Part shown: positions 19,901-34,900 of the stretch, piece by piece
Numbering within the stretch: position 1 is the stretch's first letter
How the letters are laid out: each line of letters opens with the position of its first letter
Source: Octopus bimaculoides
Taxonomy: Eukaryota
Reading direction: 5' to 3'
NCBI RefSeq assembly: GCF_001194135.2
Contig: NC_068982.1
Span: 169,093,702 to 169,157,701 of the forward strand
DNA length: 64,000 nucleotides
Translations under genes and position numbers: made by a program
Notes under the pieces: model-generated
What the model was told of the DNA's origin: nothing
Database searches by the model: none
Seen by the model: only the letters and a program-made list of their open reading frames with translations

Positions 19901-22900
19901 CAAATTTCACAATTTCACATAAAACTCATATTCTGTTTGTTCAATAGTCATTCCATTAAGATAAACACCATTAAATGTATAATTACATAATTTAAATTAA
20001 ATTCAAAAACTAGAAGGCTGTAACTGAGACAAAGAGGACAACAGAAGACTAAGAAATCCCTAATTCAAATTCCATCAATGTTGACTTCGCCTTTCATCTC
20101 ATTTTTGTATGGGTGGGCTTATAAAGTACTAGGCCAGAGCAGTGGATTGGTGAAAGTGTTAGAGTATTGGATGAGAAGCCTTACAATATTTGTTTGACTC
20201 TGAGTTCTGAGTTCAAATTCCACCAATCATCTGTATAGTTGGAAGTAGGGTGTTTGGAATTTGGACATGGAGATAAACCTTCAATGTTATATGGAATGAC
20301 TTGTATTAATGTAAAAATAGACAGAGAAAAGAAATTATCTTAGAAATGAAGTTCCAATATTATTATGAATAAGACTAACTGAATTTCTTTTCATTTCTGT
20401 ATATGCATTCTAGTAACTTGTATTATTACATTTCTTACAACTTGACTTCATTAACTGTCAATGAATAATTAATAATTACCTTCAGTTCACCAATAGTATT
20501 GGATTCAGCATCTTCAGTGTCCTTTCCTCGAAGCATTGTGAATGAATGGCAGAAATCTGAGAACGCTGCAAAGTTTTCACAATTTTCAAGTTCATCATTA
20601 TAAACCTGGGAAAAGAGATTAAATTCTTAATCATCAGTAATATTCAACTTGTCACCACGTGTTCAAATGTTACAATCTCTAAGGGAAATAACTACATTTT
20701 GATCCCAAAAGTTATTTGAATCTATAGCTATAATAGTCAGACATGCTGACAGTAAAATAGTAAGAGAGAGTGACAGAGAAGTAGCATGTTAATGGTGGAG
20801 GGGGTTGTGGAGGTGGCAACAGCCAGAGAGAAGACAAAATAGAAACAACAAAGTTACACTGGATATTTATTATATTATTACTAACACTGTAAGTTACCTA
20901 AACCTAATTTTTAAACAACCTCAACAACCTGGAGCACTGCCTTGAAGGGTTTTAGTTGAATGAATTGACCCCAGGACATTTTTTTAAAGTCTAGTACTTA
21001 TTCTATCGGTGAACTGCCAAGTTACAGAGACATAAACACATCAACACCGACTGTCAAGTGGGGATGGGGGTACAAACACAGACATGCACATATTATTATA
21101 TATATATATATATATATATATATATATATACATAAATATATATATATGTATACAACAGGCTTCTTTCAATTTCCGTCTACCAAATCCACTTAACAAAGCT
21201 TTGGTTGGCTCNNNNNNNNNNNNNNNNNNNNNNNNNNNNNNNNNNNNNNNNNNNNNNNNNNNNNNNNNNNNNNNNNNNNNNNNNNNNNNNNNNNNNNNNN
21301 NNNNNNNNNNNNNNNNNNNNNNNNNNNNNNNNNNNNNNNNNNNNNNNNNNNNNNNNNNNNNNNNNNNNNNNNNNNNNNNNNNNNNNNNNNNNNNNNNNNN
21401 NNNNNNNNNNNNNNNNNNNNNNNNNNNNNNNNNNNNNNNNNNNNNNNNNNNNNNNNNNNNNNNNNNNNNNNNNNNNNNNNNNNNNNNNNNNNNNNNNNNN
21501 NNNNNNNNNNNNNNNNNNNNNNNNNNNNNNNNNNNNNNNNNNNNNNNNNNNNNNNNNNNNNNNNNNNNNNNNNNNNNNNNNNNNNNNNNNNNNNNNNNNN
21601 NNNNNNNNNNNNNNNNNNNNNNNNNNNNNNGAATAGAATTCGAACTTGCTCAGGGACTACACTAATATATAAAACATTTCTGATAAAAAAAAAAAAAAGA
21701 AACACTTGTTTTTGATTACTATAAAGAGTGAGAGAACCATTTGAGATTAACAAAACAGAACACTTGACAGGCCTTCTGGTTTGAGAAGTGAAAATTCTTT
21801 TTTTCTTCCTATTGTGACGAGTTACTAATAACAAGACAACATTCTACTTATAAAATGAATATCTGATATCAGAAACATTACTTAAAATACAAAAAAATAT
21901 AGAATTAATGTTTATGAAAAACAAATTGCTAAATCAATGTCAAAAATGTTAAAAACTACTATCAGCATTACTTTGTATAAAAACTTAGCAGTTATTTGAG
22001 AAACAGTTGAAATACAAATACTGCTGGATGTAAATATTTTTAATTCATTTCCATTAAAAGAATACCTAAAATGCCATAATTCAGAGCCATTTAGAAATAC
22101 TCAAAATGGTTTCCATCAACAGTCTTATCTTGTGATTTATTTCAAGAATATTTTGAAATGTAATACAATTATTACTTACAACAAGCTTGTCATATCCTTT
22201 TTCAAGGTATTTCTTGCACTTTCCACTGTCCCCAATAGAAGCATAATACTTAGACCACCAGTCAATTTCAAGATCTAACAAATCTGTTTTCTCCTGTTAA
22301 CAAAGATATATAAAGTAAGTCCAATGCAATGAAAAATAATTATTAGGAATTCAATTTGAATTGAAAGCTTTCCAATATTTCAATGAAAATATAATATTAC
22401 TCACATTTAACAATCAATATAATTTTACATAGCTAGAAAACATAAATACAAAACAAGATTGAATACATGAAAAATATTAAAAAAAGGCATTTCCCATAAA
22501 AATTAAAGTCTTCTCGATATTAAGTTTCCACCATTATGAATTGGCTATACTGGATCACTATCCCATACTTCTAAAGATTTTTAAGCCCACAGTCTAGAAG
22601 CTTACATATAAAAAGTAGAAGAAAAGAAATCAAAATTGTGTAGACTTAAAAAAAAAAAACCCCAAAACTGAAACAGAATCTTAGATAAATGAGAAAGCTT
22701 TAGACATTTTTTATGCTTTGTGAAAAATTCATATTAATTCTAATTTTTCACAATTATGAAAATCCAGCTACTGCATAAATTTGTTCATAAATGAAATTTA
22801 TTTCAATACAAATATTCAGAAAATACCATATTTGCTTGTGTAAAATGCAACAGGTTAATACAAAACATCAAAGTTAAAATCAGGAGTGGGGGTAGTATTA

Positions 22901-31900: not shown

Positions 31901-34900
31901 TGACGAATGCAAATGGTTGCTAAGCTGTAATGTCAAATGTGAAGTACAACTTGAAAATCTAAATCTAATTTTAATATTAATTCTTTTGCAGATTATATTA
32001 GCCTAAATTTTAATAAGTCTAGATTAGAGATTGGAATCCCAAGCACACAGTTTCTAAGACTGATGTTATATATATATATATATATATATATATATATATA
32101 TATATATAATCATCATTATTTAACATGTTTTCCATGCTGGCATGGGTTGGATGGTTTGACTGAAGCTAGTAAGGCCAGGGGCCGCACCAGGCTCTATTGT
32201 CTGTTTGGCATGGTTTCTATGGTTGGATGCCCTTCCTAACACCAACCACTCCATAAAGTGTGTTGGGTGCTTTTAATGTGGCACAAGCACAAGCGTTTTC
32301 TACATGGCACCAGCACTGGTATCAGTTCTGTTGTGGTGGACAGGTGAGCCATGAAGAAGATTTTGTTCTAACATTATTATATGTGTTTTTATAGCTGGAG
32401 TTTATTAAATCAGTGTCGTTATTCTAATTTCCTTTCAAACACTAAATGGATTTCAAGAGTTTGCTGATGTTGTCCTCAATGTTGGCTTACCATGCTGGCA
32501 TGAGTTATATATATAAGAAAGAATTTAAAATATTTGATGATTAAAATAATAAAGGCACAAAACTGAAACAAGATGTAAAGTTAGATTGTTTTGAATTTCA
32601 AAGATTAAAAACAGATTTTGATGACTGTATGCCATTACTGCTCTGCTAGTTAATCTTGTAGTGCTTTCAAAGTAGTGTTCACTCACACAAATACTAAGAG
32701 CAGATTATCTGTCATTTACATATAAACCAATGAACAAAAAAATAGAGGTTTATAGTTTCTGAAATATAATATTTTCTAAAGACTTTCTAGCCATGTATAT
32801 CATAATTCTAAATCAATACCATAGTGTATCTTTGTATACTCCTATGAAGTAAAGTTCGAAAAAGTTTCTGAAGGATGATTAGGAGAGATACGTTAAGTAA
32901 AAAATAATGTGTAACCTAATTAAGAAAAACAACTAAATTTCAGGTTAATTTCTAACCCTTTTGTTATCATATTTCAGTTGAGATACAACACTTTTGTTTC
33001 AATTTTAAAAAATAACGAACAATTTAGTAAAATAACTGACATTACTAGATTGGTATTTGTAACATAAATTGATGAAATTTTAATGGTAGGCATTAGTTTG
33101 GGTCACTTTAAAACTGTAAGTGTTGTAGAACCAGGGGTTGGTACCAAAAGGGTTAAATTAAGTTTTCCCTTATGATGACTGTAAGTGCAGGTGGAAAGCA
33201 TAGTGTATGTGATATGTAGCAAAGTTTGTGTTGAAGCAGAAAGTAGCAGGAAATGAATGGTGAATATTTTTACCTTTTTCCCTTGTGGCATCTCATCAGG
33301 TGGCATATCAATAGCCATTTCAGCAGGTGGGCCATTGCCAGGTGTTTCTCCTGAAAATACAGTTTAAAGGAAATAGTCAAAGAGAACAGAATAGAGGTCA
33401 ATATATTTTATGTCTCCTGTTTATTTTCAATGTTTAAGAATTCAAATTCTGTCATAAATACCTCCTAAATTCTCCAGACTACTAAATAAGCTGCAGTCTA
33501 ATAGTGAAGTAAAATAATCAACCACACTATTTCCATTTTATTCATGCACACATCTACATAAGGTGTAAGGATGTTCAATAATTAAAATAAAACTGTATTT
33601 TCTAACTGAATGAATTATTTCTTTTATTAAATCACCTAGCAAATCAAACAAATTACTCATGTGCTTCCTGTTACTTCTAAGGGGATACCTAATATATCTT
33701 GTATAAGACAGGCTTACATGAGAAGAGTCTCTATATGACTGCTCAATCTGCTATAAATAGTAGCCAAATCTGCCTCAAGACCTATCCTTAGAGTAAGGGT
33801 AAGACCTGAGGTAAAAAGAAGGATGTATTAGATAATGTAGTTGTAAATAAGGGTCATAAGTCTGCTGACTCAATCAGAGATGATCTGGACCAAAAGCACC
33901 AACAAGCCACCACTGTATAAAAAATGTAGTCCAGAAAATTTTATCATTCTTTTGCATTAGTGAACAAGGGACAAGATTACATTTTCTTCACGAATGAAAC
34001 TTATCATCATCATCATTGTTTAACGTCTGTTTTCCATGCTGGCATGGGTTGAATGGTTTGACATGGAGCTGGCCAGCTGAGAGCTGTCTAGGCTCCATTT
34101 GTCTGTTTTGGTATGGTTTCTATGGCTGGATACCTTTCCTAACACCAACCACTTTACAGAGTGTACTGGGTACCTTTTATGTGCTACCACATAATAATGC
34201 ATATTATTGACACTGGTATGAGTGAATTTTAACATGGCATTGGCACAATTATTATGAACTTAGGGACCAAATTATTACAGCTATAAAACTACTATTTGCC
34301 AAGAATGAAATCATTAATTTTACAGAATAGAACATAGAAAATTGAGTATAGTATACATTAGTCAATGAATACTGATTCATTCCTTAAGCTGAAAATGAAA
34401 AAGACATTTTTAATTGAGGTTAACTATTGCAAAAGAAAATATACAAAGAGTGGATGTGTGGTGAAAAGCTTGCTTCCCAACCACATGGTTCTGGGGATCA
34501 ATCCCACTGTGTGGCACCTTGGGCAAGTGTTTTCTACTATAGCTTTGGGCCAGCCAAAGCCTTGTGAGTGGATTTGGTAGACGGAAACTGAAAGAAACCT
34601 GTCGTGTATGTGTATGTGTGTCCACCCTACTACCACTTGACAACCAGTGTTGGTGAGTTTATGTCCCCATAACTTAGCAATTTGGCAAAAGGGACTGATA
34701 GAATGAGTACCAGGCTTAACAAAAAATAAGTACTGGGGTGGACGATGCATTCAACTAAAAATTCTCCAAGGCGGTGCCCCAGCATGGTTGCAGGCTAACA
34801 AATAAAAGAAATGACTAAATACCAAAGAAACACACACACAATTTAAACAGTTTAGTACAATGTCAAAGGTTGTTCTTACCTGTAGTAGATTGTTCTGGAG

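Follow-up and report, generated by a model that had tools for sequence, protein, structure and literature searches.

An old 99-nucleotide coding exon, probably a regulated cassette, predicted before the DWWSK segment of an octopus ferlin gene

Results

A ferlin gene with a large apparent intron before the DWWSK segment

The window, a stretch of 64,000 nucleotides (nt) of Octopus bimaculoides DNA from contig NC_068982.1, has its minus strand occupied by a ferlin gene, probably of the DysF type, and we describe here a predicted 99-nt coding exon, probably a regulated cassette, inside the largest apparent intron of that gene. The gene model was assembled from stop-to-stop open reading frames (ORFs) together with tblastn searches with mollusc and other ferlin fragments. 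It comprises 29 exon cores, the first in the FerB/DysF region near 56 kilobases (kb) and the last in the transmembrane tail near 3.5 kb, with a Pfam C2 match (E = 1.9e-25), an exon encoding DWWSKYYAS, part of the conserved DWWSK segment that lies between the fifth C2 domain and the sixth, and a C-terminal transmembrane anchor marked by a tblastn match at 3575..3489. For the DysF region, which in this family consists of W/R-rich nested repeats, exons encode two candidate stretches of 19 and 16 residues, and the only Pfam match was to Pex24p, a dysferlin-motif family, at 24.1 bits, just below the cut-off of 26.8. The best homologs bear the names dysferlin-like or myoferlin-like, and we assign the gene to the ferlins, probably of the dysferlin/myoferlin type.

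Two constitutive exons frame the site of interest. The upstream one (33350..33274, minus strand) ends in phase 0 with the donor gtaaaa and has homologous exons, found by tblastn, in two comparison loci, L001 and L002; the downstream one (22293..22180, minus strand) encodes the DWWSK segment and begins behind a cag acceptor. Between them lies an apparent phase-0 intron with GT..AG borders (33273..22294, minus strand), which at 10,980 nt is the largest of the 29-exon model, the runner-up having 4,287 nt; 16 of the 28 introns in the model share phase 0. A preliminary description of the locus had named this 11-kb, phase-0 interval, which follows the post-C2E linker exon and precedes the DWWSK exon, as the largest intron of the gene, and its coordinates and borders bear that out. 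The figure of 10,980 nt is the length as assembled: a gap at 30552-30561, flanked left and right by the TA repeats of an intronic (TA)n microsatellite, leaves the true length uncertain and sequence possibly missing. If the 99-nt exon is used, the interval is at least two introns, of 6,869 and 4,012 nt.

A predicted 99-nt exon is shared with other animals

The 99-nt exon (26404..26306, minus strand) would encode 33 residues in phase 0-0, between the acceptor ttttttttaag/AGT and the donor GAAGAG/gtttgt, where the slash marks the splice junction. A codon-usage measure for which the known exons of the gene served as training set gives it 0.24 bits per codon, within the range of the known exons (p = 0.017 against equal-length open intron windows), and it was the best in-frame candidate in a scan of all phases. 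Two forms that the preliminary description had entered as one 18/45-nt candidate, 45 nt (26350..26306) and 18 nt (26323..26306) long, are the 3′ end of this exon and use its donor at 26306. Because conserved coding sequence, K-x-[ML]-S-[FY]-P-Q, is also present on the upstream side of the acceptor of the 45-nt form, we take the 99-nt form to be the conserved unit.

The comparison was made with four further ferlin loci, L001, L009, L010 and L011, which are animal contigs in ENA (ERZ25071447, ERZ25074796, ERZ25073293 and ERZ26273219). The L001 ferlin has its upstream exon at about 3013-3075 and its DWWSK exon at about 10103-10213, and the best tblastn match to the 99-nt exon's peptide falls between the two, at 6281-6337. 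This match lies in a 90-nt phase 0-0 exon (6248-6337) that reads SSLFHHKFLGAKRLSYPQMELPDLAKDGSK between the acceptor aag/AGT and the donor G/gtttgc. The octopus and L001 exons are reciprocal best tblastn matches and are collinear inside the orthologous intron. The other three loci each hold a 78-nt phase 0-0 exon situated 5.5-8.9 kb upstream of the respective DWWSK exon: in L009 at 1111-1188 (peptide IYGDRLFSYPQKELAMLKPLKKPSRE, donor gtttgt), in L010 at 4436-4513 (IFGDRSYSYPQKELSLLQPLKKKSRE, donor gtttgt) and in L011 at 1605-1682 (IFGHPIYSYPQRELSSLKPLKKPSRE, donor gttcgt). A core of S-[FY]-P-Q-x-[DE]-L is common to the octopus exon and all four other loci, as is an unusual and weak donor, G/GTT(T/C)G, found in five of five species; the weak AAG acceptor is common to this window and L001. 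The exons of the four loci thus resemble the octopus one in gene, intron, phase, motif and donor, and differ from it in length (90 and 78 nt versus 99 nt) and in the residues that flank the core.

The introns of L010 and L011 can no longer be aligned with each other, and over the 10 kb that precede the DWWSK exon the 99-nt-type exon is the sole conserved block, with 71% identity against 72-77% for the downstream constitutive exons. Differences between L009 or L010 and L011 within the exon number 12 at third codon positions compared with 6 and 6-9 at the others, and many of them are synonymous changes that fall within the core; the three 78-nt exons differ from one another mostly in this synonymous way. 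Because of this concentration at third positions and the synonymous changes in the core, we read the pattern as a coding signature. A profile hidden Markov model (HMM) built from the four foreign peptides, with the octopus sequence excluded, ranked the octopus ORF first when all six frames of the 64-kb window, with 4,058 ORFs, were searched, and in shuffle tests the octopus peptide gave p = 0.0002 against L001, 0.01 against L011 and 0.03 against L010.

Some of the numbers weigh on the other side. The whole-window HMM E-value for the octopus ORF is only 0.13, and its single pairwise matches to L009, L010 and L011 are weak on their own (E of about 0.4-0.6). Since L009-L011 are mutually related, the independent lineages number about three and not five. 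No homolog of the 99-nt exon was found in the oyster contig L004 or in L002, L012 and L013. With these points counted, the combined evidence of position, frame, splice sites and substitution pattern argues for a real coding exon of great age at 26404..26306, common to at least two other deeply diverged lineages. Conservation of a candidate exon together with its splice sites across species was found for this exon only (L001 and L009-L011), and an independent expansion in this lineage, as the preliminary description had suggested for the whole set, is contradicted in its case.

Two further comparisons were set aside. Flanking intronic conservation between L009 and L010, considered as a hallmark of alternative exons, was dropped because the two are close relatives and another exon shows extended blocks too. 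A MAFFT DNA alignment of the exon and its flanks from the five species was discarded, since it placed the two most distant sequences wrongly.

Open AG..GT frames arise at chance rates in the intron

Candidates with AG/GT borders and open frames are present at all four places proposed in the preliminary description, for exons of 75, 3, 84 and 18/45 nt. We compared their abundance with order-2 Markov simulations of the intron, counting as a candidate any stop-free AG..GT segment in phase 0-0. The intron holds 386-389 such candidates compared with 376±38 in the simulations, and 22 AG-NNN-GT triplets compared with 22.7. At the splice-score level of the original four, 4 candidates were observed and 1.9 expected (p = 0.13). 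Since these counts are at chance level, the criterion of open, splice-bordered frames alone proves nothing. The proposed array of in-frame exons thus holds in part: the interval appears to contain at least one real coding exon, of 99 nt, of which the 18/45-nt forms are the tail, but only one of the four candidates is supported beyond splice-site resemblance.

Splice-site matrices built from the gene's own 28 donor/acceptor pairs gave summed-score ranks among the 386 candidates of 1 for the 3-nt form, 2 for the 99-nt form, 9 for 75 nt, 11 for 45 nt and 12 for 84 nt; the ranking is partly circular, because the candidates had been picked for good-looking sites. The acceptors of all of them are weaker than most constitutive acceptors of the gene. 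Their GC content is 0.38-0.41 compared with 0.29 for the intron. No candidate region is repeated elsewhere in the 64-kb window, and tblastx of whole introns returned low-complexity matches only, apart from the match to the 99-nt exon.

The 84-nt candidate (26721..26638, minus strand; 28 residues) lies 233 nt upstream of the 99-nt exon and combines a strong GTAAGT donor with a weak acceptor. Both its codon usage of 0.16 bits per codon (p = 0.043) and its GC content of 0.38, where the intron has 0.29, are exon-like. L001, L009, L010 and L011 yielded no homolog, and between L010 and L011 there is no conserved block in the comparable 1.6 kb upstream of the 99-nt-type exon. It may be a lineage-specific exon and a second cassette. 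A stronger internal acceptor, cttcag/CT at 26678 (score 9.2), would yield a frame-shifting 41-nt version (26638-26678), perhaps a decoy site or a poison exon.

The 75-nt candidate (31251..31177, minus strand; 25 residues) has fair splice sites, but its codon usage of -0.07 bits per codon is lower than that of every known exon (p = 0.15), and tblastn gave no supported cross-species homolog in the comparison loci. Two apparent leads were rejected. A resemblance of its peptide to 'SKLSK...' linkers in other invertebrate ferlins (P0124, P0154, P0177) and the oyster exon described below reached a profile E of only 21, and none of these segments finds the candidate by tblastn; a tblastn match in L001 (5450-5479) contains a stop, lacks splice sites and lies in a short ORF. 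The 3-nt candidate microexon (30346..30344, minus strand), caacag/ACA/gtaagt, has the best splice-score sum and is indistinguishable from the 22 chance triplets. The assembly gap at 30552-30561 lies between the 75-nt and 3-nt candidates and touches none of the four; continuity of frame over it is irrelevant, because no candidate spans the gap and each is self-contained in phase 0-0. Orthology, splice borders and coding constraint thus come together in the 99-nt exon and in none of the 75-, 84- and 3-nt candidates.

The insertion site matches that of dysferlin exon 40a

Cutting of DYSF exon 40a by calpain releases mini-dysferlin C72. In our alignment A1, a dysferlin-like fragment from a snake carries a 21-residue insert directly before EEEFIDWWSK, in the same column where the window candidates insert. 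Calpain cleaves dysferlin within the alternatively spliced exon 40a, between exons 40 and 41 (Redpath et al., PMC4230592), and according to a cryo-electron microscopy study the 21 residues of exon 40a are inserted between Q1470 and E1471, at the surface of the protein (PMC11544258). Species differ in the length of the acidic stretch that precedes DWWSK, and the intron positions are equal within that uncertainty. By this alignment and placement the insertion site of the window candidates matches that of exon 40a, in agreement with the preliminary description, which had put the intron at the position of the vertebrate alternative exon.

The likeness is one of architecture. Each exon lies in a phase-0 intron immediately ahead of the acidic stretch and DWWSK segment, and both are short, symmetric and dispensable for the core fold (63 nt in vertebrates and 99 nt here). 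No window candidate has convincing sequence similarity to exon 40a, and none of the vertebrate sequences compared contains the S[FY]PQx[DE]L core. Smith-Waterman comparison with the snake 21-residue insert found no similarity for the 99-nt exon (p = 0.27) or the 84-nt candidate (p = 0.42). Ten residues of the 75-nt candidate (31192-31221) align to INTQTARPHL of the snake insert with a Smith-Waterman score of 23 and a shuffle p of 0.005, uncorrected for four tests; the same candidate has no match to the human exon 40a fragment LAPTNTA-SPPSSPH. For exon 40a, alternative use and calpain cleavage have been demonstrated (PMC4230592), whereas for the window exon alternative use is a prediction.

Ferlins differ at this site

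A Saccostrea myoferlin-like gene (P0002; L004 1348-1410) carries in the same intron an annotated 63-nt phase 0-0 exon, TGKAILVKARSKLDSALQRIK. It resembles the octopus candidates in being small, in phase 0-0, between the post-C2E and DWWSK exons of a mollusc ferlin, and it stands in a deposited gene model; in sequence it is unrelated to the 75-, 84- and 99-nt candidates. Different molluscs thus seem to carry different small symmetric exons at the site before DWWSK.

The segment encoded by the 99-nt exon is missing from many ferlins, among them the oyster model, rotifer and vertebrate forms, and L013, where only about 670 nt separate the flanking exons. If the octopus gene skipped all candidates, its linker would have about 60 residues, as in rotifer and vertebrate canonical forms; with the 75-, 84- and 99-nt exons all included it would have about 146, longer than in any homolog compared. 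No proteins of this species or its close relatives that carry the candidates were found in the collections searched, the best identity over the DWWSK exon being 79%. The representative search with a single-exon query returned mostly one-exon genomic ORFs, and its top match, P0039, proved to be a translated satellite. A transcript-like Logan contig, L005, begins inside the intron and is uninformative about upstream splicing.

Repeats and other features

A remnant of a Mos1/mariner transposase (HTH_48, Pfam PF17906, E = 1.2e-13; 29530..29658, minus strand) lies in the big intron in the gene's orientation, with decayed ORFs continuing to about 29220; it is not part of the gene. Copies resembling a short interspersed nuclear element (SINE), GC-richer and with long open frames, occur at 32125-32320, 28940-29125, 34430-34750 and 40220-40600. 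One such copy (29014..28940) came third in the all-phase scan and was judged a false exon candidate.

Elsewhere in the ferlin model, the donors at 51405 and 44341 are doubtful, and the long apparent introns 47118-51405, 41839-44341 and 12667-15993 may hide further exons, like the 99-nt exon; a gap of 794 N (13108-13901) lies inside one of them. The exon next after the DWWSK exon (VYDGELEK..GKDDDDEESNVMGEFK) is present in L010, at 11582-12552, in several tandem copies, some full and some partial, which could be duplicated or mutually exclusive exons, or an exon-born satellite.

Discussion

We conclude, with a probability of roughly 0.6, that the 11-kb interval of this ferlin gene holds a genuine and old 99-nt coding exon that is probably a regulated cassette; its use as a cassette, judged as a question of its own, we rate as somewhat better than even. 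When used, the exon would add 33 residues just before the DWWSK segment, with the S-[FY]-P-Q-x-[DE]-L core among them, and the choice between skipping and inclusion would thereby decide whether a surface loop displays a short linear motif. Regulated inclusion is probable because the splice sites are suboptimal, the exon is symmetric and many ferlins lack the segment. The acceptor is AAG, and the donor, GTTTGT, has U at positions +3 and +4.

The points that count against regulated inclusion come from the gene itself and from the comparison. A few of the gene's constitutive exons have equally weak splice sites, symmetric exons are common in it, as expected where 16 of 28 introns are in phase 0, and the conservation of the exon between L010 and L011 is on a par with that of constitutive exons. 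The support for the 99-nt exon comes from genomic sequences.

An alternative is that the exon is always included. On such an account the 99-nt exon, perhaps with those of 84 and 75 nt, is constitutive, the direct junction from 33274 to 22293 never occurs, and the 'largest intron' reflects an incomplete gene model, the exon having escaped the preliminary description because this part of ferlin is not conserved with vertebrates. The degree of conservation between L010 and L011 and the frequency of phase 0-0 exons speak for it, as do the long segments that other invertebrate ferlins have at this point, with linkers of about 100 residues in Nucella (P0008 and P0167), and the small exon that the oyster model has in the same intron. 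Against it stand two suboptimal splice sites, of which the weak donor has been kept in five species, the many ferlins without the segment, the ordinary length of the roughly 60-residue linker that skipping would leave, and the roughly 146 residues that result from including all three exons, which exceed any homolog compared. We regard constitutive inclusion as rather unlikely, and as the most serious of the alternatives to a regulated 99-nt cassette.

The preliminary description had gone further and proposed four independent cassettes of 75, 3, 84 and 18/45 nt, born in this lineage and giving up to 24 combinations, that tune linker length or the calpain-mediated release of a two-C2 mini-ferlin from tissue to tissue. 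The site does match that of DYSF exon 40a, all candidates are in phase 0-0, their GC content is exon-like, and the 75-nt candidate has its weak 10-residue resemblance to the snake 40a-like insert. The candidate counts at chance level nevertheless undercut the set as a whole. Among its members, the 3-nt exon is backed by splice scores alone while triplets of its kind are as frequent as chance predicts, neither codon usage nor homology supports the 75-nt candidate, and the 18/45-nt variants would cut away the conserved upstream coding sequence K-x-[ML]-S-[FY]-P-Q. With the 99-nt exon ancient rather than an independent expansion, we consider this proposal very unlikely. Least likely of all is that every candidate, the 99-nt exon included, is a chance open frame and the cross-species matches a coincidence or a conserved non-coding element: bare candidates do occur at the chance rate and individual alignment E-values are modest, but the pre-specified 99-nt ORF came first of 4,058, the matches in five loci agree in order, strand and frame and are bounded by splice sites, the substitutions are rich in synonymous changes, and the shuffle test against L001 gave p = 0.0002.

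Two consequences concern annotation. Open AG..GT frames by themselves are no evidence for exons within long AT-rich introns, and gene models that join 33274 straight to 22293 would omit coding sequence.

Should regulated use of the 99-nt exon as a cassette prove true, the surface site modulated in invertebrate ferlins would be the one at which vertebrate dysferlin undergoes its injury-triggered cleavage, and S[FY]PQx[DE]L would be a tractable conserved motif for the control of the C-terminal fusion module. A broader and decidedly speculative view, which we think improbable, is that the loop before DWWSK is an ancient bilaterian hot spot in which different lineages repeatedly acquired small symmetric regulated exons: exon 40a in vertebrates, the 63-nt exon in the oyster and, in the octopus and other invertebrates, the one with S[FY]PQx[DE]L. 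The motif would then be a regulated docking or cleavage site that controls how the C-terminal two-C2 membrane-fusion module is released or engaged, and the 'mini-ferlin' switch would predate the vertebrates.

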